From: Iphione sp. A-MEVVRFRX5
Taxonomy: Eukaryota
Length of the DNA: 64,000 nucleotides
NCBI GenBank assembly: GCA_976226885.1
Contig: OZ320321.1
Location: forward strand, 46,438,001 to 46,502,000
Direction of reading: 5' to 3'
A program made the translations under genes and the position numbers. How positions within the stretch are numbered: the stretch's first letter is position 1; every line of letters begins with the position of its first letter. Positions 865 through 26,217 of this stretch are shown here, piece by piece. A model generated the notes under the pieces. It saw nothing but the letters and a program-made list of their open reading frames with translations, ran no database searches and was not told where the DNA came from.

Positions 865-2683
865 TGCGCGGTATACAATCCCAATGAATTCCATTTTGTT
901 AATATGCTTTCCAAGCTTTTTTTTACCAATGAACGAATGGAGCCTAGACTGTGCATTGTCTTATGTAAATAAAAATACCCATGGTAACAAAACAAAACCA
1001 GTTTTCAGATAAACTGACCGAGCACAATGTCAAACCTACCTGTTTGTAGTGAAAACACCCTGTCATCTGTGTATTTTCGACCGACAATTGACTACATACA
1101 TGTATCTGTAGTGATAAAAGTACTGGCCATGATTACCATGATTTACTAGAAGGCGCCATTAGTTAAATAGCTAATCACCTTCCCCGCATAAAAGAATAAG
1201 GCAAAAAATAATGGTCTAAAGGTATATACCGTCTTAAACAGCATAGATTGCAGGGCATATTTAATTATATTTACTACATATCTATGGTAGACATGCAGGA
1301 GAATGGCTCTCGCCTTACCATCGGCCATAGTTATCAGTGTAAATAAAAAGGGCGTTACGGTGGTTCGTATGTGCGACAGGTTCAGAAGGTGATTATATTG
1401 CTCGGGGAGTAACTCGGCGCATAACGCTAGGGCCGTTATACGTCAATTGACGCACTGTCTACTCGCCCACCTACCAGAAGAGGCCTTTTCCTCATTATTA
1501 CCATCTGCCAGAAGCCCTCAAGAGTTGACAGGGAGATATGCACCCCACTAAAAGGAATTCTATATCTGCAAAATGCATCCATGTCTCCGGGGTACTTTAA
1601 ATGTATGGACCGATTAAGGGGATGCTGCTGCACTTTTCTTTTCTATCAGACTGCATGGGCTTCAATGGATGGGGGCAGGGAGGGGTGGGGGTTAGTCTTG
1701 CCTCAGGACTGGCGGACAGGGACCGGCGCTGAGTGGGGTGCTCAAAAAAGCATTCGTCTGTTGTCGGGCAATAAAAAAAACCCTTTTATATTTGATTTAT
1801 GAACAGTTTGACTATATATACAGATGAAACGGTCCTCAATTAGAAATGGTGGATACGTATGGACATGAGATGATGCTTGCTCTCAGCATGGCCTGAGTAC
1901 CAAATGCTTCCGAAATAATATGATAAAATATCAGGACAATTCGCACCATTGGCAACCCGCACTATACCCAACTCATATACCAGTACACACTTAGACCAAC
2001 AGCAACTCTTACCGAAATCATCTCATGTCATCGCTGATCTAGCACGTTCACGTCTCTGTCTGATTTAATTGAATTGATGTAGTTTATAGCAAAATAGTTT
2101 CATAATGTCTGCTTTATATTCATACTACATTTAAATCCTCTGAGAGGGCATTAAGTTGAATTCGACTATCTCCATAGCATGCACAGAGTCTTTTTTCCAA
2201 GTCATTGCGAGGAATTCCTAAAGGAAGTGTGTATAATAGTACATGTGCAGACAGTAGATTATAATGAAGGAATTAAAAATAAATGCAGTGTTGAACATGA
2301 AAATAAGTAAATATCAAAAACTTTCACGCTCTCATGTATCCTACGTGTCAATTATGGCAAACACACTAAAAACTTGCACTGTTCTCACGTATCGCAGTGC
2401 AGGTTCTTTATACAAGTAATTATGTAATTTTAATAATCCTGTTATGTGGTGACATCATATGAAGAAATATACAGTGGCTCTCAAAAGCGAATACTTGACA
2501 TTATGATATGTGGCATTTGCCGAAACATGATATGCATGCTCGGTTCACTAAGTAAACTGTATGTTAAAATTAAGTATGTCCATAAACAATATAAAAAGTT
2601 ACGAGATCATGCATCATCAGGGAAGAAGGTAGGGGTTTATTATGGTGTGAGTGGTTTATGGTCAAATTTGGTAATGATCCAGG

Positions 2684-2960
2684 TTAGTCATGGTGTGAGT
2701 TAGTTATAGTGAGAGCTGCTTATAAGTGCGAGTCATGTATGGTGCGAGTTGGTCATTGTATGAGCTGGGCAATGGCTGTTAGTCATAGTGCGAGTTAGTC
2801 ATGGTGTGAGCTAGTCATTGTATAAGTTGGCTATGGTACAATTTGTATATGGTGTGAGTTTGTTGCTTGGTGTAAGTCAGTGATACTGTAATATTTTATT
2901 TGTTAAGGTGCGACTTTGTTATTGTTTGGGTTGGTTATAGTGTAACTTGCTTATTGTGCG
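2684..2960 (+). repeat. degenerate ~16-bp minisatellite (TAGTCATGGTGTGAGT-like)
   Basis: Repeated variants include TAGTCATGGTGTGAGT, TAGTCATAGTGCGAGT and TAGTCATGGTGTGAGC. Confidence 0.7.
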
Positions 2961-3086
2961 AGTTCCCATATGATCTGGATTATCAAAAATCTTAATACCA
3001 CCTCCAACATACATCAAATATCACTGATTGAGCAAGATCTGTGCCTTAAAGAACGGCTGAGCAGATCGTCGATAAAACGTACTTAC

Positions 3087-3264
3087 CGGACTGATGAAAT
3101 CATAAAAAAAGCCATCTCGCCGTCTCCGTCAGTACATTTACTTAAGGCACTACAATCAGACATAATCCCAGCTGTCTCTCTTAATGATCCGCATAGTGCA
3201 ATAATTTTGTGATTGCTTCTTTCTTTTAACTGAATGGCGCGGTCCATGGTGTACGGTAGGCTGA
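3087..3264 (-). other. candidate isolated internal exon of an unknown gene
   Basis: On the minus strand a T-rich tract and CTGCAG precede, and GTAAGT follows, a segment with one open frame (SLPYTMDRAIQLKERSNHKIIALCG...FMISSV). No homology was recognised. Confidence 0.25.
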
Positions 3265-5410
3265 CTGCAGAATAAAATATCGAAATCAATAAGAAAACGT
3301 GTATAGGGCGAGTGGAAGATTGTTTCATATCTATTTTAGATAAACTATGTTAACTTAAAAGATAAGATAAAGATAAAGTATGTTGATTTTTTCATGAAAG
3401 GTAAGGTAAGAAGCTGAATAAAGAAACAGAAGAGAAGAGGGAGGGAGGGAAGGATGAGGGAGAGTAAACATGAAAATTGTACCTGCCTGAAGATAAATGG
3501 AGATGAGTTAAAGAAGAATTTAGAGAAAGGTTCTTGGGGCAATTAGTAAAATTAACCTATGCCCATGATTTGGTGTACTCAACCAGAGTTTTTGAACTAC
3601 AAGTATTACAAATTGATCAAATAGTTCTCCATTTGCATAAAATGAAACGAGGCTTTAAAAACATATCTAAATTATACATTGTATCAGGTTTGCAATCAAA
3701 AACCCTTCGAAAACACATTTGGCTCGGACATTATCTACCATATAACTTGTCCAACATGGTGATTTTTTTCTCAGTGATCTGGCCTGAAACAAGTCATCGA
3801 TCTCCTGGAAGTAACATCTGTCCCTTGTCCAGTTGTGACAAAGCTCGGACAGAGACAAAGTGAATGTAGTTAGATGCCAATAGAAATATATCAATATCTC
3901 TGAAGATTTAAAAGATAGGGATTAGTACTCTGCACGGATGTAGGTGGAACTGTGGTAGGCATTTGTTTGTTTAACCTCTTTCTAACCGTTCTTGGGAGAT
4001 TAAGCTTTAAGGCTGAAGACAGTGTAACCTCACTAATACCGTCACCATGGGCTCCCTTTGGCAGGAATAAGGAACGGGGGTGGATTAGTGAGATGACCTT
4101 ATTAGTGAGGTGACCGTACCGTGAGGGGTCACTGTAGGTTAGGCCCGGACAAATAGCAACTGCCCTCCCACTCAACCATGTTGCCGTGACACCAGGCAGT
4201 AGGCAGAGCTTCGTTCAGACCTCTGCATAGTGTTTACATTCTTCGTAGAGCTATTCATGTCTCTTACTCTGGAAAGTCGTGAAAATCACAGTATAGAAGT
4301 ACATGTAGTTTATTTAATATTCAACTTGCTTTCTTTGTCAATCTCAAGTACAATCTCTTTCTGTAGTTTTGCCAGCGAAACATATATTTGAATTTGAATT
4401 TGAATTTTTATTAATCCTTCTTTGTCGGTTGTACAAAGGTATCCGGGTTAATAAACGTAGGTACAAATATGAATGACAAGAGACATGTATACATACGAAG
4501 AAACAAAGACTGACGTATGACAGAGTACACAAGCACAAAAGTACAGAGAATATGACTCGATCACAACACGATAGTAGGTTAAGTGACTCGGATTAGCAGG
4601 ACTTGCTCGTGGACATGTAATCCGCTGCCGCGGTTGTAGAAAATACCATGATAGGCTTACTTTGTGAGAATGACAGTAGTTACACGAGAACATATAATTC
4701 ACTACCGCGGTTGTAGCATATACCAAATTTTTTGCCAGGACAGGACACACTCACACCACATGACGCTGGTTTGGTAGGGTTGCTGGCAGTATGGCCGCTT
4801 ACCAGGGAACGCGAAATAATGGCGGTTATGATATGTAAAGGGAAAAACGGATGATGCATTAGATGATACTACACCTAAGGGGCCACAGTCTGTTGGTGTA
4901 AGACTCGGAGTCAGTTGACTCATACCAGTTGCCTAATATGTGCTGAAGGTGGACCGCCTTGATGCCTGTGTTTATCGCAGACAGCGCACAGCCATGATCA
5001 TTTTTGTCCTTGACCAACTTGACCAATGCGCCTATGTAGTTCTGATTACAATTTGGATATTGCTGAGTGATTAGGCTGAGTGATTAGGTAGGGGCCGGAA
5101 AAGGAGAGGAGGGGGTCGACACCGTATGTCGATTGAGGTTTTCACGGTTCTGTTAGTACGGGAAGTAGGAGAGAAAGTCTGGATGGTGCAGCAAGAGCTT
5201 AGGACGGTTGTGCATCAGTTAGGCATGGTAGTAGTTGTTAGTTGGTGTTAGGAAGCGAGAGGTGGGATGTGCGAATTGCGACGAAGTTTCTCTAACATCT
5301 GGAACCAGGTGGTCCACAAGATACTGGTCTAGCACGGGTCGATCTGCCCATTCGCTCGGTTAATGAAGTGGGATACACTCATCACTCTGCGTGTTAGCCG
5401 CCAGAGAAGG

Positions 5411-8200
5411 CTACAACTCTCTGTGCGGGCCTGTTTCCACTTGCTTGTTGGCCCAGCTCCTGAAGTTGGGCCGGTCCTTGCTTTTCATCGAATCAGGAAG
5501 CTCATTCCAGGCCACAACTGCCTTGAAGCGTAGGCTGCGCCTGAAGAATTGATTCCTTGGTTTCGGGGTAGTCCCTCTATGCGTCATACCCCGTCGCGTC
5601 TTAGTGCTTTTAGCCTTCGGTAGAAGCCCAAGCATCATCTGATGATGAATGGCAGCCAGTGCTCTCTGTTCCACAAGTCTGTCTATTCTATCTATCTTGA
5701 ACTTTGCTGCCAGGGTTCGCGCAGACAGGAAGGTGTGTTTTTGCAGACAGATCCGTGCACATCTGTTTAGATGTGTTTGGAGGTTGATCTTGGCCGACGA
5801 AGAACAAGCATAGAATAGGACAGCCGGATAGGTGATGTGTGGTAGGACTAGCGCCTTAAATAGGTGCAGTCTCACTTTAATTGGGAGTATAGGTTTGGTC
5901 CTCCCAATTTTCACTGCGGCTGTCCACATTTTCGCCTTAGTCTCTTTTAGGGCTACTTTGAAGGTTAAGCGTTCATCTAGCGGGTACCCCAGGAGTCGGA
6001 TGGTGTCAACACGCTCCAGTGTATCATCGTTGATCTTCAAGTCGAGGTCTACTCCAGCCGCGTTGCATAATGTCATGTACTGGCACTTATTTGTGCTCAG
6101 TAACAGACCTACACTGTCAAGCCATCGACAGACTGCATTGATGGTTCTTTGCGCCGCGGCTCTTAGACGCAGGAGGTCTCTTGCATTCACGACTATAGAC
6201 AAATCGTCAGCATACATCACCGCACTGGCCTCTCCTGGGAGGTGCTTGACGACGCCATCCATGATCAGGTTGAATGCTTGAGGGCCGAAGACTGATCCCT
6301 GAGGTACACCTTGGGTGATCGATCTTAGACCCGAGGCTGCGCCGTTGCATTTTACGTATTGTGTGCGACCATCAAAGTAGCTCCGTAGCATTCTCCTTAG
6401 CCTCGGCCCAGCACCAGCTTCATTTAACTTGTCCAGGACCCCGGCTGATGGAACGAGGTCAAATGCTTTCTTCAAATCGAAAGCGAGGATGCAGCAATAT
6501 TTGTCGGCATTTAGAAGTTCCATAGCAGTCAAGAGTAGTTTGACTATGGCAGTTTCTGTACTACGGCCTCACCGAAATCCATGTTGTTCCTTATGTAGGA
6601 AATCGCGTTTGTCTAATTCCTTGGTGATGGCGTTGACGACCCATGTCTCCAGTACCTTCCCCGGAAGGGGGAGGATGGAGACAGGTCTGTAATTGCCGAG
6701 CTCATTAGGGTCTCCCTTTTTATGTAGCGGTGTGACCCTCGCTTGTTTCCATGAACTTGGGTAATTGCCCGCGATGAGGATACCTGAGAAGACTTGACTA
6801 AGAAAGTCTAAGTTCTTCAGGAGGAGTGGTTTCAGAATGCAGCTCGGTATGCCATCAATCCCTGATGCTTTCTTAACGTTCAACTTGCTGACCAGGGGGC
6901 GTAGCTGGCACGGCGTAGGCGACGGTACCTCAAACTGCTCACCATGATGACGGAACTCCCCGCTTCCAGTCCATTGTCTTCCTTCGGCTAGTTTGTCAAC
7001 AACATCCACAAAGTGATTGTTTAAGCAGTCAGCTACAGAGTCCCCTGGCTTGTCCGTTACAGAGTCAAGCTCAGGGAGCACCAGCTGTCTTTGGCTTCTC
7101 CCAAGGACTTCGTTGAGTACAGCCCATAGTTCATCACTAGATTTTCCAGCCTCGGTAACCCGGGCTGTCCAGTAAGCTTTCTTTTCTTGTTTCACCGCTT
7201 GCTTCACTCTCTGGGCTAGGAATCTGAAGATCCTTAGTGCGTCTTCGTTCCCATATTTCTTCCACTTCCGGAAGTAATATTTTCTGTCTTCGATAAGGTC
7301 CAGTGTCTCTCGGCTCGGGCGAAAGCCATCCTTCGGTTTAGGTTTTGATCTTCTCCTAATAGGGCACAATCTGTCCAAGATAGTCTTGACTTTCTCCTCG
7401 AAGTTCGCCCATAGTACGTTCGGGTCCTCCTTTAGATCAAAACCATCGCGGTGTAGCTCGTTATGAAGCTCCTCAATGTCCACGCAATGCCAGCGCCGTG
7501 ATTCGTAAAACTCCATATTTTGTCTTGGGCGCCCTTTCTTCATTTGGACCATCACAGGCAGGTGGTCGCTGAGGAGCCAATCCAAAACGGATGTAGTCGA
7601 TCTACCATGGTAGTTCACCCAGATGTGGTCAAGGCATCGGTTTGAGTTGATCATAGTTCCGCCTCTAATCAGCTGAGTCAGACCGAGTCCTCCTAGTGTC
7701 TCTGAGATTCCGGCTCCCGCCTTGCCTCCATCTGAGTAGTCATAGTTCATGTCGCCCATGACTGTAACATCGTATCTTCTATGTCTCCCTAGATGGGCAA
7801 CTATCTGCGAAAGATCTGGAGTCGAATCCTTGACTCTGTCATGAGGCGGCCTGTACACTCCGAATATGGTATGCGGTCTTCTCATACCACATGTGACAGT
7901 CACTCCGAGTATTTCACTGACGCCAGCAGTTGAACTCAGGTTGAAGATCTGTTTGATAGAGTACGATTCCTTGATGTAGAAGATTAGGCCCCCTCCCCTT
8001 TTCTTGGTTTGGGATTCTCTGTCTTTGCGCACCATGTTGTATCCGTCAATCGCTACCTCTCCGTTGGCATGCGTCTCGTTGAGCCAAGTCTCAGTGATGA
8101 GACAGATATCGATGTCATCTTCACGTAGGTGGAACTTGAGCTCGTCTATCTTTTTCGGCAGGCTTCTTATGTTGTATGACACTATGCGAATCCCCCTCAT
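5411..8200 (-). pseudogene. LINE ORF2 (APE endonuclease + reverse transcriptase) with one in-frame TGA at 6571-6569
   Basis: APE motifs: IVSYNIRSL, LITETWL, MGDMN, LDHIW, SDHLPV. RT motifs: YRPVSILP, HGFR*GRST, FDLKKAFD, VPQGSVFGP, YADD. The C-terminus has the CR1/L2-type AWNELP. The two track ORFs are in the same frame, 12 codons apart. Confidence 0.95.
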
Positions 8201-14600: not shown

Positions 14601-16511
14601 CAATTTTAAACATTGATATACCCCAAATCATTCTAATTCATTGAACATGAGCTCTAAATGGAGAGGAAGCCATTTTACTGATCCGTGTATACACATCTGC
14701 ACGCTGTCGTCAGGTTGCTATGGTTGCTGTTTTTCCCCGTCTATCAAAAGAGGGAACAGACCACGTTGTGTAGAGGTAGCACGGTCGAAGCGATAATCGT
14801 GACATTCCCGAAGGTAAAAATTGGCCGCGTCGTGAGGCAGTGTTCGGTCAAATAATTATGTCTCTCCAGCCTAATAATTCCCCGTAGGAAAAAGACAGTG
14901 ATTTATAATTTGAAGCGGGAAGGTTTTTGGATTATAGGGGTGCTCACAAAGGTACTGCCAAATACAGAATCATTGTTATTCTTCTACTCCATTTTTTGGG
15001 CCAGGCGTTTTAATAGTCAGATACAAGATTCCGATATGCAGAACTTTGAAAATAAAAATAATCTACTTTAAATTAAATCATATCATTTCGTCCAGCGGGC
15101 AGAGAAGAATACATTACATACAGACCGAGAGAACATATAAAGCCGCGTTCTCATCAGAAACGACATGGAAATGCACACACTATATTGAGGTTGTACCCAA
15201 TGAACACAAACTCAAACATTAAAGGTTGATTTCGGTACGACGGAGGAGATCTGGAGACCAGCGGTGACAGGTCCTAGTGGTTCCTTTACCGTTAGACGAC
15301 ACACCAATGTACTAAGACCCCGCCCCGATGCACCCCTCTACCAGTCCCATGACGCCTGAGGTCCCGGTATCTCAGGAATATTTACTCCCGATGTCATATT
15401 GCTGGTACGGATTGGTACTGGTTCCGGGGTATGATGCCAACTTGACTCGCCCTGCTATGATTTTCTGAGTAGTGAGTGAGTCTGGGAGGGGCATATGTAG
15501 ATAGCGCTTTTTTCAGGAAAAGAATTCTTTTTCTAACGCAGGCCCTACTAGAAACCATACACCCCAAAACGTATAAAAATTGGCCTTTATACTAGTTGGA
15601 GAGATTAGGACAGTCACTTCGCTTTATATCATATGATGTATATAAAACTGGGTACGTAAAAGTTCATACTCTTTATAAGGTTAATTTTTATTAAATGAGA
15701 TTTAATGAAATTTCCTGTGGGCATGTACAGTCGAACCCCGTCTTCCGTACAACCTCCGCCAGTTCGCTCTGCGACTCGTGTCCAGAACGAACTCCCCTTG
15801 AGCCTCTCTCAAGGAGCTACCGCGACAGGCTGACGCACTCTACCGAGTTTCCAGCCAAGACAGCCGTGACCAGGAGTGAAGTAGCACCAGCTATACACTC
15901 CTACAAGCCTGACAGAGACGTCCCCAGACCAGACTCTACTGATCCCGGACCAGACCCTGCCATTCCCCGACCCAGTGCCACCTTCCTTGCCCACAGCCCT
16001 TCCCCAGAATTTTTCCCCACCCCAAATCGACTAAGTTTTACTTTTTGAGTTTTTGTTCTATTCTCACAGATTAGCCGGCCCGCAGACGACTCCACATATC
16101 CCTGAAGCTCCACGACACAGACTTACGACGCTACGACGATTTTTTACGTACAACGACAAATCCGACGATATCTCGACGTCTACTTGACCGATTCCCTCCA
16201 TATTCGACAGACATATCCCCCTAACCGCCCTCCATACGCCCTGAGAAGCTCAACTTTCTACCGCTAACCGTTTTCCCACTACGACCGCTTTTCGACACGA
16301 CCGCGACTTCGTCCGATTGACTTCAAACTTGGTTTTCACACCCTTCAGACGGCCCGCAACACCCTCCCGCTAACCGCGAGTTGCTCTGAGCAACTCGCGG
16401 CTCCTCTCCTCAAACACCTCGTATCCCTTTGAAATTTTTCACACATATCCCCCACCCCCTTTTCTCACCTACCTGTAAATTTCGAGTCGCTCGGAGCAAC
16501 TCTGAGCGACT

Positions 16512-17365
16512 GGCGACCGTTTTTGTACAGTTAATTTTTCTCACTTTTTTCTACCCCCCACCTGGCCCGCAACCCAACCCCCTTTTCCTTCTTCAAATCC
16601 TCCACTTAGTTTTCAAGTTATCCCCGTTTTTCTCCCCAACCCTCACCTCGCCCAATCCCCTCCAAACTCCAGATTCCTCCCCCTGAAGTACTTCCCAAGG
16701 TTCCCACCAACTTTCAGCCCCCTAACCCCGATAGAAAACCCCTGGCACCCGTTTTTATCCAGTTAATTCTTTTCACCTTTTCCTACTCCCCACCTGGCCC
16801 GCAACCCAACCCCTTTTTCCTTTTTCAAATCCTCCCCTTAGTTTTCAAGTTATCCCCGTTTTTCTCCCCAACCCTCACCTCGCCCAATCCCCTCCAAACT
16901 TCAGATTCCTCCCCCTGAAGTGCTTCCCAAGGTTCCCACCAACTTTCAGCCCCCTAATCCCGATAGAAAACCCCTGGCAGCCGTTTTTATCCAGTTAATT
17001 CTTTTCACCTTTTCCTACTCCCCACCTGGCCCGCAACCCAACCCCCTTTTCCTTTTTCAAATCCCCCCCTTAGTTTTCAAGTTATCCCCGTTTTTCTCCC
17101 CAACCCTCACCTCGCCCAATCCCCTCCAAACTCCAGATTCCTCCCCCTGAAGTCCTCCCCTAAGTTCCCAACAACTTTCTGCCCCCTAACCCCAATAGTA
17201 AACCCCTGGCAACCGTTTTTGTCAAGTTAATTTTTTTCACCTTTTCCTACTCCCCACCTGGCCCGCAACCCAACCCTTTTTTCCTTTTTCAAATCCTCCC
17301 CTAAGTTTCCAAGCTATCCCCGTTTTTCTCCCCAACCCTCACCCCGCCCAATCACCTCCAAAATC
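16512..17365 (+). repeat. 232-bp tandem array (~3.7 copies) upstream of LINE ORF1
   Basis: CTGAAGT recurs at 16683, 16915 and 17147, an exact 232-bp period. The copies are highly similar. Confidence 0.95.
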
Positions 17366-17369
17366 ACCA

Positions 17370-17848
17370 CGCATATTGCCCACCCAATCCTCAACATTTT
17401 AGCGAAAACCCCGTCCCTCTAGACCCATTATTAGCCGAGCTACACCCATTTTTCTACCTAACGTAAACTCTTCCCTACCCCTCCCACACTTGCCATTCGC
17501 ATCACCCACCCGTCCCCCAACAGTTTAGCGAAAACCCCATCCTCCTAGACCCATTCTTAGCCAAATTATCCACGTTTTTCTGCCCAACGCAAACTTCCAC
17601 CTAACCCCCCCATACTCACCACGCATATTCCCCACTCAATCCCGAACAGTTTAGTGAAAATCCCGCCTCTCTAGCCCTATTTTTAGCCGAGATATCTCCG
17701 TTTTCCTACCCAACACTAGCACATCCCCAAATCCTCCCACACTCACCACTCGCCTCCCTCACCTAACCAGCAACTTTTTGGCACAAGTCCCGTCCCTCTA
17801 GCCCCAATAGTTCCCAAGTTATTGACGCTTTTCCACCCAGCACTGACC
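17370..17848 (+). repeat. ~125-bp diverged tandem array (~4 copies)
   Basis: CGCAT...TTTAGCGAAAACCCC...CTAGACCCATT..TTAGCC recurs at ~17370, ~17498 and ~17621, with a more degenerate copy at ~17749. Confidence 0.8.
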
Positions 17849-17981
17849 GAACTCTAGGGAGGTCAATAAGCCAAAAACGGTCCCCTTGGGACCCAAAGAC
17901 AAAACCAACCCAATCCAACCCCTGAGCACCCTGTGATTACTTTTTTTGTGTTTTTCTTTGTGTCTCTTTCTCATTTTCAAG

Positions 17982-20564
17982 ATGCAGACCAGGAGCCGGA
18001 CTACTACCAGTCCGGACGAGTCCCTGAGAATGGTGGAGACGAAGCGACGCCAGCGGCCGACACCCAAGCCGGACTGGTTTGGACAACCTGAGACTGGGGG
18101 TAGACCCGAGACTACCCCCTCCGACAAGGGTGAGCAGGTGGACACCCTGTCTAAAGGGGAGCCGAGCAGACCGGTGGTGGCTCGGAGCGTATCCCCTGCT
18201 GGTGAAGCTGACACCAGCATTAGTAGGCCGGTGGCTACTACCAACTTTGTCCCCGAGGAGGCCGGCCTACCAGGCACCTCCCTGTCGAAAGGGGAACCGA
18301 CCAGGCCGTTGGCTGCTCGGAAAGAACCCCCTGCTGGTGAAGCTGGCACCAGCGGTAGTAGGCCGGTGGCTACTACTAGCACTGAACCTGAGGAGGCTGG
18401 CCTGCCAGGCACCTCCCAACCCGGTGAAGAGGGCACCGGTGAAAGTGGTAGCAACCCCAGCAAAAGGCCGGTGGCAGTTGCTGGGGAGACCGGCCCGTCG
18501 GGCACCCCCCAAGCTGGTGATGTAGGCACCAGCCAGAGTGGAAGGGTGACCACTCAAGACGCAGACCCAAGCAACCATCCCACAGATGTTGCGAAGAACA
18601 AACCCAGTGAGGTCGGCCTGCCAGGCACCTCTGAGACCGGTAATAAGAACACCGGCATGAGTGGAGGGGCGGCCACTCAAAACAGTGCAAGGAGGGATGT
18701 ACCCCGGTACATCCTCCCACACAGAAAGGGCAGAGGGGCGGCTGCCCAAAACTCCCCTAGGGGAGAAACCAATAAACACGAAGGCTCCGGTGGAAGGGCG
18801 ACCACCAAAGGCAGGCCAGTGGCTGCCGATGCGAGCACAGGCAATGATGTTGATGGCTGGACTATGATAGTGAGGGCGGCACTATCAGACGAGTCAGGGA
18901 GTTCAGGGGCGGGAACTCGCCCTGTAACCAGACCCGAGGCAGGTTACAGGAATGCACTGCTAAAGGGGATTGAACAGTCTCCCCGTGGTGAAGCTGGCAC
19001 CCCAAGTGCACCACAGATCAGCAAAACCAGGCTCTTCTTCGACTCGTCGCTGTCCTCCATCAATGACTCAGAGGTGGAAGTTGAGCCTGAGGGCCCCACC
19101 AATGGGTCGACCCAGACCCAGTCGTCCCCAAATGGAGATGACGAGGATGGGTTCATCACTGTCCGTAAAAAGACTCGCAAACATAAAACACCCAGGAGGG
19201 CCGTGGCGGTATTCTATGACCCACAAAACCCCACCTACCCCTTCCCAGCAGCAGATGAATGTTGCCCAAATGGCAACTATTACATCTTCCCTGGTAGGAA
19301 TGGAGTGTTTTATGTAGGAGCCCGAGATGTAGAAACCGCAGAACGCCTGAGTCTGGCACTGACTAGGCGCTGCGAAAAGTACATCCTCCAGGGAGTCCGA
19401 CCTTGCATCAAACCGGACGACCTGGTAGGAAAAATTGAAATCATTAAGGCAGAGCGCATCTGCAAAAAAGACGGCAGTCCCACCTGGGCAGTCTCCATCG
19501 AAACTGAGCTGGAGATGGACTGTTCTGAAAAGGTGGACCTGGGCGCCTATGGCCGCTGTAAGGTCTCTCGACCCTACAGCATGGTCACGAGGTGCTTTAG
19601 GTGCCAGGCCTATGGACATAGGCAGGCGAACTGTCGCGCCCAAACAGCACGGTGCGGGAAGTGCGCTGGGCCCCACACGACCAGGACCTGCACTGCAGGC
19701 AGGGAAGTGGGGTTCCGGTGTGCTAGCTGCGCCAGGGCCCACCAGGCTGGGGTCCACTCCTGCCCCGCCTGGAAGGCTGTCTGGAAGAGGGTGAACGGTT
19801 CGGTTCACCCTCGACAGAACGCTGCTGGGAAGCAGAAAAACTCCAAGCCGACTCCAAAGGCCCAAACCCCTACAAAAGGGGCCAAGAATATGGCCAACCA
19901 TAAGGAGCGGCAGCGCTTGCCAACTAGTAAGGGCTCGGAGCGCACTCGACAGCCGACCTCTCGGAAGGCTGCCAAGAAGCGACACTCCATCCTGGTTCGG
20001 AAAGCTGCACCGATCCCGGAGCCCAATGGCCAGTCTACCGCCATGGAAGAAGCGACACCGATCGTTTCCTCCCCAAGGCTGGAAGGTCTGCCTGCAACTG
20101 CCCCCCCTCTCCAACAACCAAACTCTAGTTTGGCCAAGGAAGGGCAAGGCAAGCGCAAGGCAGCTCGGAGATCCGCAAAGAACAGGAGGCCGAACTCGGG
20201 GGAGGCCAACCCTGTCAAGCGGAACCAGACTAAAGAGCCGGTTCAGGGAAATGCTAAGTTGCCAGCCTCGGGGAAGGCAACTGAAGCTCCCGGGACAGCT
20301 CTGCAGTCTGAGGGCACTCCCACTCAGAGGCCGAACACTCGGGAAGCCACTGAGAAGGGAAAGCACTCCGAGAGGAAGAAATGCTGCTCGTGCAGCTGCT
20401 CACCGGTTAGTGAGGGGGACATCCTCGGGATGCTCCAACTGCTAATAAGGGCCCTACGTGAGTCCCCCAATGCAGAGGAGATCATCTCTGACCTCGCCTC
20501 TAGGCTGGTCACCTCCAAGCCAGTGAAGAGTACTCCTACCACCAACAATGGGGACGGACAGTAG
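17982..20564 (+). CDS. LINE ORF1, gag-like nucleic-acid-binding protein (~860 aa)
   Basis: Three zinc knuckles: CFRCQAYGHRQANC, CGKCAGPHTTRTC, CASCARAHQAGVHSC. Both termini are low-complexity. The first ATG is at 17982 (the track start is a non-ATG codon). It overlaps ORF2 by 17 nt. Confidence 0.93.
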   Translation: MQTRSRTTTSPDESLRMVETKRRQRPTPKPDWFGQPETGGRPETTPSDKGEQVDTLSKGEPSRPVVARSVSPAGEADTSISRPVATTNFVPEEAGLPGTSLSKGEPTRPLAARKEPPAGEAGTSGSRPVATTSTEPEEAGLPGTSQPGEEGTGESGSNPSKRPVAVAGETGPSGTPQAGDVGTSQSGRVTTQDADPSNHPTDVAKNKPSEVGLPGTSETGNKNTGMSGGAATQNSARRDVPRYILPHRKGRGAAAQNSPRGETNKHEGSGGRATTKGRPVAADASTGNDVDGWTMIVRAALSDESGSSGAGTRPVTRPEAGYRNALLKGIEQSPRGEAGTPSAPQISKTRLFFDSSLSSINDSEVEVEPEGPTNGSTQTQSSPNGDDEDGFITVRKKTRKHKTPRRAVAVFYDPQNPTYPFPAADECCPNGNYYIFPGRNGVFYVGARDVETAERLSLALTRRCEKYILQGVRPCIKPDDLVGKIEIIKAERICKKDGSPTWAVSIETELEMDCSEKVDLGAYGRCKVSRPYSMVTRCFRCQAYGHRQANCRAQTARCGKCAGPHTTRTCTAGREVGFRCASCARAHQAGVHSCPAWKAVWKRVNGSVHPRQNAAGKQKNSKPTPKAQTPTKGAKNMANHKERQRLPTSKGSERTRQPTSRKAAKKRHSILVRKAAPIPEPNGQSTAMEEATPIVSSPRLEGLPATAPPLQQPNSSLAKEGQGKRKAARRSAKNRRPNSGEANPVKRNQTKEPVQGNAKLPASGKATEAPGTALQSEGTPTQRPNTREATEKGKHSERKKCCSCSCSPVSEGDILGMLQLLIRALRESPNAEEIISDLASRLVTSKPVKSTPTTNNGDGQ

Positions 20565-23500
20565 ACACGAAAGGAACAACCAACTGACTATAGTCAGCTG
20601 GAACATTCGAGGCTACTCAGGCCGTCGTGATGTTCTACTGAACTATGTCAGAAGGAAAGCTCCGGACGTCCTACTGATCCAGGAGACGATCAGCCGTCAT
20701 CTTGGCCTCTCCCTTCCCGGCTACAGGACCTTTGAGTCCCCAGCTGGACAAGGGAAGCAGGGTGTTGCGACTTTGGTAAGGCGCTCGATAGCCTGTGAGG
20801 AAATCCAGGTAGCAACAAAGCCTAACCCCAAAACTGAGATGGTGAAGGTTATGCTCCGACTGCGCGAAGGCTGCAAGTTGGAAGTCATCAACCTCTACCA
20901 TCACTGCTCAACCCGGTTCGCCCTTCGGGACTGGCTGAGCAGTGATGCTCCTGAGGATGGAGCTCACCGGCTCATCGCTGGTGACTTCAACCTCAAGCAC
21001 TCAGCTTGGGGCAAAAGCAACCCGGACTCTCATTCCGGAAAACGCTTCCTGGAGGAACTCACTGACGATACTACCCTGGTGATCCTGAATGATGGGTCGC
21101 CGACCCACCAGTCGGGATCATCAATAGATCTGGCACTGGCTAACAACCAGCTGGCCAACAAAGCTCAGTGGGAGGTCACTCCGGAGCTCTTCTCGGACCA
21201 CTTCAGGTCTAGGATTAGCATCGGAATGCCCAAAGTACACATACCCACTCGCCCTCGGTGGCTTAACCTCCCTAAAGCAAATTGGGAGAAAGTCAACAAG
21301 TGCCTTGAAAGCCTTGTTGGGCAGGATGGTAGAGAGGTGCTGGATCACGAAACTTTAGCTGGGATGATCCAGACTGCCATGGACAAGCATATCCCTGAGA
21401 CCAGGCGGCCAAACAGTAGGCGGTGGTGGTACAACACCTCTCGGTGCAAACGAGCCACCGCCACTGTGAACCGCATCAGTGGGCTCTACCGCAAAACCCG
21501 CTCCCCTTCACTGCTGGCCGCTCTTCGGCAGGCACAGAAGTGGGCCAAGCAGGTCTACGCGGAGGAAAAATGCAAATCCTGGCAGAAGTGGTGTGAGTCT
21601 TTCAACGCACAAACCACCACCAAGGTTCTCTGGGACAAGATCCGAATCATACGGGGACTGTCCCCCAGAGAATCCCTCCATCCTCACCCTGCCGAGAAAG
21701 TGGAAGAGCTGGCCTCGCTGTTCACTCAGCGCACAAATCCAGACAACCTCCCAGAAGGCCACAGGAGGGCACTAGCCAACCTGAGACCTGAAAGGGAGGA
21801 AAGTATCAGAGAGGCTACTGAGCGCCCAAGCCCAGACGGGCTTGATGGCAAAATTACCTCAACGGAGATCGCGAGAGCACTCCACGGAGCCCATAACACG
21901 GCTCCTGGATCCGATCGCATCCCAAAGGTACTTCTGGCCAAACTAAACTCTGGAAACATGGACACGCTCCGCAAAGTGCTGAACGATGTCTTCCAGAAAG
22001 GGGAAGTCCCACCAGCTTGGAAACTGGGTAACATCGTGCCCATTCTCCCAAAGCTGATGGAGGACAGCGCCCAATTACCCTACTCCAGACCATGGGAAAA
22101 GTCCTGGAAAAGATTGTGCTCAACCGGGTACGGCACTCTCGTGAGCTTGCTGGATACAAGACCCCGGAGCACATCTACGGCTTTGAAAAAGGCCGTTCGA
22201 CGGCGCATTGTGTTGCAGCCCTCCTAAAAGAGGTGCTTTCTGCCAGACAGAAAAGACACAAATGCATCGTCGTTTTCCTGGACCTGGAGAAGGTTTTCGA
22301 ACTGGTGGACCACACTGTAGTCCTGAGCTGCCTAGCAGGATCGGGGGTGCAGGGCAAACTTCTTGCCTTCATCACCGACTACCTCAGGGAGCGAAAGGCC
22401 AGAGTGTCCTTCCAGGGAGAGACCTCCTCCTACCATGACCTGCACAATGGAGTGCCACAGGGAGGCGTACTCAGTACCCTCCTCTTCAACAGCGTCATGG
22501 AGCAGCTGGTTGCCACCCATATTCCGGGAACAACCCTGCTCTCATACGCTGATGATGTGGCGCTCATTTGCAGAAGCAATCTGGATGCAAAAAGGGTAGC
22601 CAACCATGCCCTGGAGGTTGTGCTCAACAAGTGCCGTAGCCTGGGCCCGAAAGTCTCGAGACCAAAGACCAAGGCTATGAGCATGTACGAGTGCAATCCA
22701 GGACCAGAACTTGTACTCGGCAATGACACCATCAAATGGGTCGCCAGCTACAAGTATCTGGGAATCATGGTAGACAGAGAGCTGACCCTCAAGCCGGCGG
22801 TCGACTACATAGTCGACCGGCTGAGGGCAAGACTCCGAGTCATGGGCGTTCTGTCTGGCTTCTCATGGGGCGCCAGTGCCAGAGTCCTCCGCCAGTACTA
22901 TGTACAGGCAGTTCTCTCGGTAATAGATTACGCAGCCCCCTATCTCAGCCTCCTGCTCGGAACAGTAAGTACTGACCGAGCACAGAAGAGGATGAGAAAG
23001 AGACACAACACGCTGCTACTAAGGCTGGACCGCATACAGAACTGTGCTCTGCGCAAGATGTACTGCGTCCCCCTGCGTACACGTGTTGAGAACCTGCGGT
23101 CAGAGGCTGGCTTCCCTCCCATCCGGGACCGTATCCTCCAGGTCTTCTCCAGCTTCCTAGTACGAACTGCTAGTAAACTCGACACTGAGTACGCTAGACA
23201 GGTCAGAAAGGAGCTGGAGGGCTCAGACGAGCCGGGGACACCTCTCCCCCTCGCTCTGAAGGCAGCAGTGGCAAGGGCCAAGGAGATAGGTGGACGCCTC
23301 GTCCCCACTCCCGAAACCCTCCAACTCGCTCCCTGGGAACGGATCCCGGTCACCATAGTGGCCAGTCTCCCCCCTCGCAAGAAGGAGGAGATCAGCCCTT
23401 TGGTACTTCGGACCACTGCCCTCGCAGAGATAGATGAGACTAGGGAACTTCTGCCCGGAGCTACGCACGTCTTCACAGACGGCAGCTCAGACCCCGCCAC

Positions 23501-24320
23501 TGGCAGGGCAGGCGCAGCCTGCACTTACCTAGACGGTAACCTGCATGACTGGATTGCCCAAGGCACCAGAGTCAGTGACGGTGCGTCTAGTCTCACAACA
23601 GAGCTAGCAGCCATCCTCCTGGCATTGGATAAGCATAGTAGGGAACCAGTGGTTATCCACTCGGACTCCTACAATGCTATCCTTGCTATACAGGAGGTGG
23701 ACAACATCCATGTGCTAGCAAGTCGCATACAGGAACTGCTACGCTTCCGTGCTTCCCTAGGCAGGGATACAGTCTTGCACTGGATTCCCTCCCACGTCGG
23801 GATTGCCGGAAATGAGGAGGCAGACAAAGCAGGCAAGGAAGCCTCGCTCTTGCCAGCGGTCCTGATGCCGACAAACCCCTCACTCCAGCAAACACTCTCC
23901 TCCATGAAAAGGGCAGTACTGGAGAAGTGGAGGGCTAGTCTGGACAATGCGTCTCCATCAAGGAGCTGGGAGTGGCACAGACATCTTATGAAGTCATGCC
24001 CCCCACCCACGGTGCACATGAAACGCAACCTCCAGACAATCATCACCAGGCTGAGACTGGGGTACAGGAGACTGGCCGACTTACCAGAGTACCAACCCTG
24101 CATATGTGGCTCGATCTTCTCACTCCCCCATGTCCTCACCAACTGTAGTGAGCTCGAGTACATTCCCATTGAGCGCTTTGCCAATGACGAGAGTCTTGCC
24201 CACTACTCGGCCCCCGACCTGGCGGTACACATTGTCAAGTGTGCCCAGGAAGAGGGCCTACACGGCCTGTACACCTTGGCCAACTTCTATGAGCTTAACA
24301 AGGAGCTCATAGATGGCTGA
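20548..24320 (+). pseudogene. LINE ORF2 (APE + RT + RNase H + C-terminal CCHC) with one frameshift near 22045-22053
   Basis: APE: VSWNIRG, LLIQET, AGDFN, IDLALA, SDH. RT: RPITLL, HIYGF, FLDLEKVF, VPQGGVLS, YADD. RNase H: FTDGS, TELAAI, SDS, WIPSHVGIAGNEEAD. C-terminal CICG...HVLTNC. The frame switches at IVPI-LPK / PKADGGQRPI. Confidence 0.95.
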
Positions 24321-25897
24321 GGCAGGGGGCACCTCCGCTCCCGCTCTCAGCCCTCACCTCCTCCAATCACTCTACCTTTTTCTCATCCTCTACTTACAGA
24401 TGCCGCACCCACGAGCATGACGATATGACCACCATCCCTGTAGACCTCACGACCCCCAGCCAGACCAGCCAGCCCACCGCTGTGGCCCCATCCAGGAACA
24501 CCCACTACCAAATCAAGGGGGCAGCAATATACAACGGCCTTATCAGGCCAACTCCGAAAGTCTGGGCCATCACAGGCCCACCACATCTAAGGGCCTTCTC
24601 AGGCCTCATCCGAAAGTCTGGTCTATATAGACCATCCCAAACGGCCTTGTCAGGCCACTCGCTCAAACCAATAACCAAACACCCCCTATACAACCACCCA
24701 CCCCCTCCCCCCTCTCTCTCTCTCTTCTCTTTTCAGACCCTGCCAAAAGAACAACAGCGGAAAAAGGAGCAACAAGACCACCCCTGGCAGCACGACCACC
24801 CCCCCCGACGGCAGCACCAACAGCGTCCCCAGCAACTCAACCTGCAGAACCACCATGACCTCCATCAAAACACCACGAACAACACCCAACTGTGCCCCGG
24901 CTCACCACCACTACATACCACCAACTCGCCGCCAGCCTCCAAAACTTCCGGGCCTACTGAGCGCCCCGGACAGTTAAAAGTCTATTCAGACTACGCCTGT
25001 GAGCTTACCTCGTGCATAGGACGCGGGAGATTGTCAACAGCTGTGAGAAGCTAATGTCCACAACCACCCAAGGACCCCTCTGCCGTGATAGCCTCCTGCA
25101 GGTGTTCTGGCGAAACTTGGGGCATGACTCTTGTCATGCATGGTTAAATGACACGCACACAAGAGGCACGCAGCCTCTCCTTGCGTGGCGCGACTATGTC
25201 GCTGCACATCAGCCGACTCCAGCAACCCAAGACGACTCCCGCGCCCTGTCCTGCACTACGACGACTGAGTGACTCGCCAACTACACCAGGTACAGAAGAC
25301 CGAGCTAGTTCAAGGCCTGCCTCACCGGCGAAGGCCAGGGCACCCCCTTCGGGGGTCGTTGCCCAACCCCCCTGTCAAGTCAAGACAACCTCCAGAATGC
25401 AAAAATTTGTATGGATGGCGAATAATACGGGGTACGAAACAGCGACTATGCATCTGTATTTGACTTAGAGCCTCTGTCAGTCGCTCCGCACTCTGTTGTT
25501 ACTACGTTTATGAGGGTCTGGGCTGCATATTGCTGTTATATAATCATTTTGCGCTGTGTTGTGTCTTCCTTTAGGAGAAGGTGATGCTTCCTTTGTTCTC
25601 TCTAGTCTGGTTAACTGCTTATATTTACTATGTTAAATGCTCTAAAATGCAGCTAAATTTTGTATGAATACAGAATATGAGTCTCCGGATAACTAGTACA
25701 ATTCATATAGAAAAACAATCAGTTATTTTAAATCTTTATGGTTAATGCGACATTATGAATACTGGGGTTACGAAAGCCAGGGCTCCTCTGTAGATCATAA
25801 TTATCTAATTAGATAAAATAGTCGATAGAATTTTAGCTTTACAATTGAGTGACTATGGGAAAGTGAACACGTTCGTATGTGCATGGGTTGTGAAATT

Positions 25898-26217
25898 GGG
25901 AGTTAGCTCAGTGGTAGAGCACTGGTCCACTGACTGAGAGGTCGCAGGTTCAATCCCAGACCTGGGACTCTCGATCAAGACCAGACAGATTTACTGTAGC
26001 CCCAACCCAGAGTGGTCTACAACTCATAAAAAGGCCGTAGGTGTATAGGATTCTATCCCCTATGTTTAAAAAGACCCAGAAACCTATTCAGAATAAGAGT
26101 AGGGGGCAACCCCCCAGGTGTTCTAGTCTCTCAATTCTCAATAATAGATGGTAGTACGCTACCCCAGGAGGATATCGATATCCACTTCCTGGTAAAAGAT
26201 ACAATGAAATAAAAATG
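25898..26217 (+). mobile_element. tRNA-derived SINE, copy 1
   Basis: A-box TAGCTCAGTGG and B-box GGTTCAATCC, followed by a non-tRNA body (AAGACCC...AAGAGTAGGGG...CCCC, reminiscent of conserved metazoan SINE central domains) and an ACAATGAAAT tail. A second copy is present in the window. Confidence 0.85.

Follow-up and report, generated by a model that had tools for sequence, protein, structure and literature searches.

The stretch analysed here (the window; 64,000 nucleotides of contig OZ320321.1 of Iphione sp. A-MEVVRFRX5, C19:46438001-46502000) contains a long interspersed nuclear element (LINE) of 9,625 bp on the plus strand (window positions 15760-25384). Copies of this LINE have inserted repeatedly into the promoters of histone H2A and H2B genes, at a point that separates the TATA box from the predicted initiator (Inr), and they always read in the same direction as the gene that follows. 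This repeated, oriented insertion is the novel point; the architecture of the element is itself of a known kind. The element is a young, recently active, multi-copy non-long-terminal-repeat (non-LTR) retrotransposon of the I-group type that bears an RNase H domain. Taken as a whole, we think it quite probable that this is an I-group-type LINE whose long untranslated regions (UTRs) are integral to it and which integrates again and again at histone TATA-Inr promoters.

Insertion at histone promoters

The genome (1.18 Gb in 89 contigs) was searched at the nucleotide level with the 5' region, open reading frame 2 (ORF2) and the 3' region of the element separately, and each was found at a minimum of 10 loci with 93-98% identity. 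Many of the copies lie at C26:55.91-56.30 Mb, near the end of a 56.34-Mb contig, where their 3' flank is the leader of a histone H2A gene or, in one case, of an H2B gene. H2A genes with this leader number 23 in the genome; two are on the small contig C67, and the other 21 are in the C26 array, where each is encoded on the minus strand and the repeat unit measures about 8.4 kb. In eight of the 23 the LINE tail is joined exactly before CGGAAGTCAG, and the remaining 15 sites are empty. The empty site reads TATAAAA-CTAGGGACCTGCAG-CGGAAGTCAG-TCACTCAGTC. The insertion point lies 14 nt after TATAAAA, at the same nucleotide in all eight cases, with CGGAAGTCAG as a 10-bp target site duplication (TSD). 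The insertion at the H2B gene is positionally equivalent: it lies 13 nt after CATAAAA and is followed by the same TCACTCAGTC motif, with a 9-bp TSD of different sequence (TGAGTGTCG). Judged from the distance to the TATA box and from TCAGT (the initiator consensus used is that of arthropods), the nick would likely fall about 9-13 nt upstream of the predicted histone start site.

The occupied H2A sites differ from one another. One holds an 815-bp truncated copy with the H2A promoter upstream of it and a perfect CGGAAGTCA(G) duplication, and at the others the element is truncated at about nucleotide 1808 or 1980 of ORF2, truncated within the monomer array of the 5' UTR, or full length. Tails have two, three or five units. 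The same H2A nucleotide also holds elements tailed with (CCTGAA)n and (ACCTGT)n; two of these other elements carry the 3'-terminal module of the LINE (described below) and the third is the (ACCTGT)n-tailed one. At four places elements are stacked head to tail, with the second or third element in the duplicated target upstream of the first and with different 5' fillers. Because lengths, truncation points, tails, fillers and families differ, these insertions are independent, and the hotspot does not consist of copies of one event.

The 5' fillers, between the TSD and position 1 of the element, at the junctions in L009-L012, L019, L020 and L028 are built from CAG, CAGT and TCAG units (for example CAGTCAGCAG and TCAGCAGCAGTCACACAG). 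In this they are similar to the start of the element as well as to the H2A initiator, and they might have been copied from transcripts begun upstream, in a master copy resident at a histone site. About 30 kb past the last histone unit, C26 ends in 28S ribosomal DNA (rDNA; C26:56327476-56337475, L007); the histone array and the rDNA array therefore adjoin at this chromosome end. Metagenome contigs that encode an identical H2B protein come from other species, with 81-86% identity in the coding sequence only, different promoters and no LINE, and are uninformative about the target.

Alternative explanations and strength of the preference

An ordinary dispersed LINE could have entered the histone array once or twice by chance and been multiplied there passively by unequal crossing-over, gene conversion or segmental duplication. 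The tandem 8.4-kb units would allow this, most module-bearing copies are indeed dispersed, two array copies are 99.6-99.8% identical, and pairs of matches lie 142.7 kb apart. Passive multiplication does not account for occupied sites that differ in element length, tail length, 5' filler and family, for (CCTGAA)n- and (ACCTGT)n-tailed elements that occupy one nucleotide although their 3' UTR bodies are unrelated, for stacks that re-use the duplicated target, or for a separate insertion with its own TSD at the equivalent H2B site. The presence of different elements at the same nucleotide largely refutes this explanation, which we consider unlikely. Base-pairing between the RNA tail and the target, rather than promoter recognition, is another way in which H2A insertion could recur. 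Such annealing is established for R1, TRAS/SART and L1, and here CGGAAGTCAG contains AAGTCA in the register of (TCAAG)n, a 6-nt identity between tail repeat and target. Elements with (CCTGAA)n and (ACCTGT)n tails nevertheless use the identical nick, the H2B TSD and the TSDs of dispersed copies are unlike the tail, and the boundary between tail and target is sharp at every site. We therefore regard annealing as improbable.

The earlier note, made from the sequence of the window, had drawn an analogy with the specialised telomere-associated elements HeT-A and TART. Such elements are brought to mind by the length and strand bias of the UTRs and by head-to-tail arrays close to a chromosome end. 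The main cluster is within the terminal 420 kb of C26, with some copies head to tail and most on the minus strand, the orientation expected of end healing. HeT-A and TART form arrays at chromosome ends without TSDs. Here the contig ends in 28S rDNA instead of an element array. The array copies examined are all at histone promoters, have a TSD and are oriented like the H2A genes, and C19, C22, C13, C11, C15 and C4 hold full-length, TSD-flanked copies at internal positions. TSDs at all junctions examined and these internal copies refute the telomeric reading, to which we assign almost no probability; the C26 cluster is a histone array next to rDNA, and the analogy does not hold.

Recurrent integration at histone promoters is thus the reading we prefer, and it has its own limits. 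Among the 17 best-matching 3' ends (93% identity or more), nine are at the H2A site or its stacks and one at H2B, and the rest are dispersed; of the 85 genomic copies of the exact module, 11 are in the histone array. Several observations weigh against this reading. About 68 of the 85 module copies are dispersed, with TSDs unrelated in sequence, no target sequence in common and no consistently placed TATA box. The window copy itself did not land upstream of a known start site; its insertion point is about 20 nt into the 5' end of another repeat, close to a possible start site. The array copies E3 and E7 are the near-identical pair offset by 142.7 kb (99.6-99.8% identity), and segmental duplication or unequal crossing-over may account for some of the copies in the array. 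Promoter capture, like the start sites of the histone genes and of the LINE, is predicted from motifs, and the terminal hairpins of the 3' module are conserved with almost no covariation and a fold no better than that of shuffled sequences (z = -0.9). Since most copies are dispersed, the targeting is a preference and not a strict specificity. As in R1 and R2, independent insertion recurs at one nucleotide of a multicopy target; unlike in elements of that kind, it is not the case that nearly all copies lie in the target. In a small sample of 15 distinct target loci, four have TCAGT within the 20 nt that follow the insertion, where 3% would be expected (P about 8e-4, or 7.5e-3 if H2A and H2B are counted once).

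A possible mechanism and its relation to known systems

An internal promoter of the initiator type, like that of Drosophila I- and jockey-type LINEs, could start transcription of the element at the CAGT of position 1, and the variable 232-bp monomers of the 5' UTR could be promoter or enhancer units like the monomers of mouse L1. The ORF2 protein would recognise the conserved two-hairpin module at the 3' end and prime within the pentamer tail, and the endonuclease or the ribonucleoprotein would be guided to core promoters, just upstream of the initiator. A tandem histone array would in this way offer a renewable landing pad, and a resident copy inserted in sense 14 nt after the histone TATA box may have its transcription driven by the histone promoter. 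Such promoter capture is a plausible proposal, as is targeting guided by a transcription complex. An expression strategy of the element's own, which the earlier note had suggested, may draw indirect support, of another kind than was put forward there, from the variable monomer array in the manner of mouse L1 and from the repeated sense insertion shortly past histone TATA boxes. We only tentatively entertain the more general idea, which we place somewhat short of even, that this LINE group is guided to RNA polymerase II (Pol II) core promoters and nicks the template strand about 10 nt upstream of the initiator, with the histone array as a renewable safe haven whose S-phase TATA box would drive full-length transcripts.

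To our knowledge, the target-specific LINEs known so far insert into ribosomal RNA, small nuclear RNA (snRNA), transfer RNA (tRNA)-spacer and spliced-leader genes, microsatellites and telomeric repeats. Like R1 and R2 (28S), Mutsu (5S), Keno and Utopia (U2 snRNA), TRAS/SART (telomeric) and NeSL/CRE (spliced leader), the histone insertions use one exact nucleotide of a tandem gene in a single orientation, with partial occupancy (8 of 23) and head-to-tail stacks. They differ from these in that the target is the TATA-Inr core promoter of a protein-coding histone gene transcribed by Pol II, rather than an RNA gene, a microsatellite or a telomeric repeat, and in that the specificity is partial, with many dispersed copies. 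A full-text literature search retrieved no report of a LINE that targets histone genes or TATA/Inr promoters, although this absence does not prove novelty. A review-type discussion from 2013 names only repeats and RNA genes as LINE targets (PMC3706591), and the Drosophila I element shows about 2-fold enrichment at promoters, 100-200 bp upstream of start sites (PMC10018349).

Because the H2A and H2B sites lie 13-14 nt after a TATA box and yet have different TSD sequences, the targeting is a candidate for positional guidance by a transcription complex rather than by a DNA word. Such guidance would resemble that of Dictyostelium TRE5-A and TRE3 and of yeast Ty3, which insert next to Pol III genes. 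The present case differs in that it involves Pol II TATA/Inr promoters and a distance of a few nucleotides from the predicted start site, instead of about 48 bp. If confirmed, this lineage would be the first among LINEs to target promoters of protein-coding genes with nucleotide precision; the finding would extend the list of LINE targets to Pol II promoters of protein-coding multigene families and provide a natural model for promoter capture by a retrotransposon. It would also raise the question of whether the endonuclease reads the DNA sequence or is positioned by the pre-initiation complex. About one third of the H2A genes are parted from their promoter by 1-30 kb of LINE sequence, which may affect histone gene dosage.

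Boundaries of the element

The alignments of genomic copies begin at 15760 and stop at about 25384/25388, and upstream of 15760 the copies have nothing in common. About 23 genomic copies retain the 5' end. Full-length copies all begin at one nucleotide (CAGTTCGC), preceded by 0-18 nt of variable filler, and other full-length copies measure 9,629, 9,866, 9,876 and 9,993 bp. Read across the junctions, the 3' end is ...AACCCCCC-TG(TCAAG)n, an end that truncated copies have in common. TSDs of 8-10 bp were seen at six or more loci, among them ACCAAACACA at C19:74.5 Mb, TACCGGTT at C22:46.1 Mb, and GGCCTCAACT and CAGGCAATAT on C13. There are no terminal repeats, 5' truncation is variable, and the 3' tail and TSDs are those of a LINE with an apurinic/apyrimidinic endonuclease (APE). 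TSDs of this length, frequent 5' truncation and a short-repeat tail are as expected from target-primed reverse transcription.

In the window the element has inserted into a short host repeat on the plus strand. The left TSD copy (ACAACCTCC) lies at 15749-15757 and is followed by two extra nucleotides (15758-15759); the right copy, at 25385-25393, is identical to it, and the empty site is present in other copies of the host repeat. The left part of the repeat (15728-15759) is joined at other loci directly to the sequence from 25389 onward, and the rest of the repeat (25394-25798) has 75-88% identity to many loci, none of them linked to the LINE. The two halves (15723-15759 and 25389 to about 25798) are contiguous elsewhere, with an overlap of about the length of the TSD, and are split here by the LINE; the element is therefore 15760-25384. 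The earlier note had given it as 15728-25816, or about 10 kb. The element proved real, and the outer boundaries did not stand: the first 32 nt and the last 430 nt or so are host repeat. Those 32 nt resemble a LINE start because the host repeat begins with the Inr-like CAGTCG. The repeat is abundant (2,149 first-look candidates); in other copies, the part matching 25389-25455 is separated from the one matching 25451-25798 by about 300-370 additional bp. With its CAGTCG start, it may be a non-autonomous retroposon.

Downstream of the host repeat, a tRNA-like stretch (GGGAGTTAGCTCAGTGGTAGAGCA...TTCAATCCC) at 25890-25960 resembles the head of a tRNA-derived short interspersed nuclear element (SINE); ARAGORN calls no tRNA gene at these positions.

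The collection of genomic copies that the earlier note had proposed thus defined the ends, the (TCAAG)n tail, the 8-10-bp TSDs and the H2A/H2B target preference. The possibility, raised in the same place, that the flanks are unrelated neighbouring repeats can be set aside: every full-length copy examined carries them, over 15760-25384.

Encoded proteins

ORF1 and ORF2 together occupy 17982-24320, which agrees with the 6.3 kb noted earlier (6.34 kb), and overlap by 17 nt. ORF1 (17982-20564, plus strand) encodes a gag-like protein of 860 aa with long low-complexity arms, which include an in-frame 135-bp repeat at 18145-18417. The frame is open in the window copy and in four others (856-857 aa). 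Three CCHC-type knuckles can be read from the motifs at 19593-19763 (residues 538-594). ORF1 has no Pfam match above threshold, and its match to zf-CCHC is weak and below the cut-off. By language-model features in a protein atlas, the central part of ORF1 is closest to arthropod gag-like clusters with zf-CCHC/PRE_C2HC, and its single-sequence AlphaFold model has a pLDDT of 36.

ORF2 (20548-24320, plus strand) encodes an endonuclease (about 20593-21201), a reverse transcriptase (RT; about 22042-22771) and an RNase H (about 23460-23843). In the window copy, which is full length, its frame is broken near 22045, leaving one piece with the endonuclease (20548-22227) and one with the RT and RNase H (22092-24320). 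The searches used either these two parts of the broken ORF or copies in which the frame is naturally unbroken. ORF2 is intact as a single ORF of 1,256 aa in three other genomic copies, and ORF1 and ORF2 are both open in three copies. The intact protein matches Exo_endo_phos (residues 16-218, E=2e-20), RVT_1 (residues 499-740, E=2e-34) and, downstream of the RT, RNase_H (PF00075; residues 971-1099, E=7e-14). With the CCHC-bearing ORF1, these domains bear out the earlier description of an RNase H-encoding LINE.

The best solved relative of ORF2 in a PDB search is human L1 ORF2p; the matches comprise L1 ORF2p, the L1 endonuclease, R2 and generic RNase H only, and do not resolve the clade. The closest database protein is 37-38% identical over the RT-RNase H region, and the named matches are all 'uncharacterized protein' entries of malacostracan crustaceans. 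Across five aligned natural copies ORF2 is 98-99% identical, compared with 92-97% in the arrays, and the ORFs are more conserved than the UTRs.

By its architecture, with RNase H after the RT and a CCHC-type ORF1, the element is of the I-group type. Like the Drosophila I factor and the I-group clades (I, Nimb, LOA, Ingi, Tad1 and Outcast), it has two ORFs, three CCHC knuckles in ORF1, an APE-RT-RNase H order in ORF2, a CAGT start at the 5' end, a short tandem-repeat tail instead of poly(A), and TSDs of about 10 bp. The I factor is about 5.4 kb long and has a (TAA)n tail, whereas the present element is about twice that size (9.6-10 kb) and has a (TCAAG)n tail, a 2.2-kb monomeric 5' UTR, a 1.06-kb 3' UTR and an ORF1 of about 860 aa with low-complexity arms. 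Its identity to any database protein is at most 38%.

Among the array copies, E1 (L001, C26:56.02 Mb) has about 364 extra bp within ORF2 relative to the others, which a nested insertion would probably explain. Over its first 176 nt it shares 99% identity with the window copy, compared with 91% for other copies, which suggests that two variants of the 5' leader exist.

Long untranslated regions

The 5' UTR is 2,222 bp long and the 3' UTR 1,064 bp. Both are present in every full-length copy examined, with 92-98% identity; they are integral, non-coding and stably inherited parts of the element. The organised non-coding sequence, put earlier at about 3.7 kb, does belong to the element, with a true total of 3.29 kb. 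The C-rich, G-poor bias of the sense strand that had been remarked on in both regions is evident from GC skews of -0.53 (5' UTR) and -0.33 (3' UTR), compared with about 0 in the ORFs and flanks.

All parts of the 5' UTR that had been described, namely a CpG-rich leader, palindromes and two tandem arrays, were recovered. The leader (15760-16509, plus strand) begins with CAGTTCGC, which contains the Inr-like CAGT, has a CpG observed/expected ratio of 1.16, and includes two palindromes, at 16374-16400 (perfect, 13 nt) and at 16485-16511. It is followed on the same strand by 3.7 copies of a 232-bp monomer (16510-17362; 42% C, 8% G; TRF score 1461) and by a degenerate 126-bp array (17364-17806; 3.5 copies, 69% match), which a stretch of 175 nt separates from the ATG of ORF1. 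The number of 232-bp monomers varies by copy (3.6, 3.7, 4.6 and about 9). Tandem monomers of about 200-230 bp in variable number are also found in the 5' UTRs of mouse and rat L1 (types A, F and TF; about 200 bp). Those elements are of an unrelated clade and sequence, and in the present LINE a unique CpG-rich leader puts 750 nt between the 5' end and the array, which is therefore not the transcription-start unit.

The body of the 3' UTR (24321-25313, plus strand) is C-rich, non-coding and 95-98% identical among copies. It contains three repeated GGCC-TTNTCA-GGCC hairpin units at 24524-24656, so the repeated hairpins described earlier are confirmed. The long open frames are not conserved, and the region measures 1,064 bp rather than about 1.5 kb. 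Coding potential was rejected: the window copy is the only one in which a 209-aa ORF attains 200 aa, and a second ORF overruns the end of the element and is likewise not conserved. No Rfam family was found on either strand of 15400-26100, and no HDV-like or other ribozyme at the 5' end.

A relative from another assembly (L077) has short UTRs. In an ENA metagenome contig (L078) with an ORF2 relative of 34% identity, C-rich, G-poor tandem repeats lie directly upstream of ORF2 (positions 2000-3300, with GC skew down to -0.74), and a poly(A) tail lies at 7447-7466. Given the short UTRs of the one and the poly(A) tail of the other, the pair of long UTRs is not a feature of the lineage at large; repetitive, C-rich 5' regions may be more widespread in it.

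The 3'-terminal module and tails

The 3' UTR ends in a module of 59 nt (25314-25372, plus strand) with two hairpins (GGCCUGCC...GGCC and GGGCA-CCCCCUUCGGGGG-UGCCC) followed by AACCCCCC, and then in the tail TG(TCAAG)2 (25373-25384, plus strand); other copies have one to five TCAAG units. Sister subfamilies have (GGAAT)n, (GAAT)n or (CCTGAA)n tails. The module is nearly invariant across subfamilies that are otherwise only 76-90% identical and differ in their tails, and in two elements of the histone array (L064 and L065) only the last 59-73 nt are in common with this LINE. In the genome, 85 occurrences of a 19-mer from the module were counted, against none in the reversed control. By analogy, this pattern would be that of the RT-recognition ends of stringent LINEs and their partners. 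As in eel UnaL2 and zebrafish ZfL2 (L2 clade), a terminal stem-loop is combined with a pentanucleotide tail, and the module is shared by otherwise unrelated elements, like the ends of LINE/SINE pairs. The clade is a different one from that of UnaL2 and ZfL2, and recognition by the RT is here suggested by conservation only. Monomeric 5' UTRs and 3' modules of the stringent type thus occur in I-group elements as well.

The (ACCTGT)n-tailed element that occupies the same H2A target (L009:2241-4001; C26:56030240-56032000, minus strand) has, before its tail, a hairpin (GGGCUGCC...GCCC) similar to hairpin 1 of the module; one base pair shows a compensatory change. Apart from this resemblance, its last 1.76 kb has no BLASTN or TBLASTX similarity to the LINE. 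At C22:575467-595974 (L031-L036 and L038), a 459-bp 5'-truncated sister copy with a (GGAAT)n tail has been amplified at least seven times in a 3.7-kb tandem repeat; here a LINE fragment has multiplied passively within a satellite-like array.

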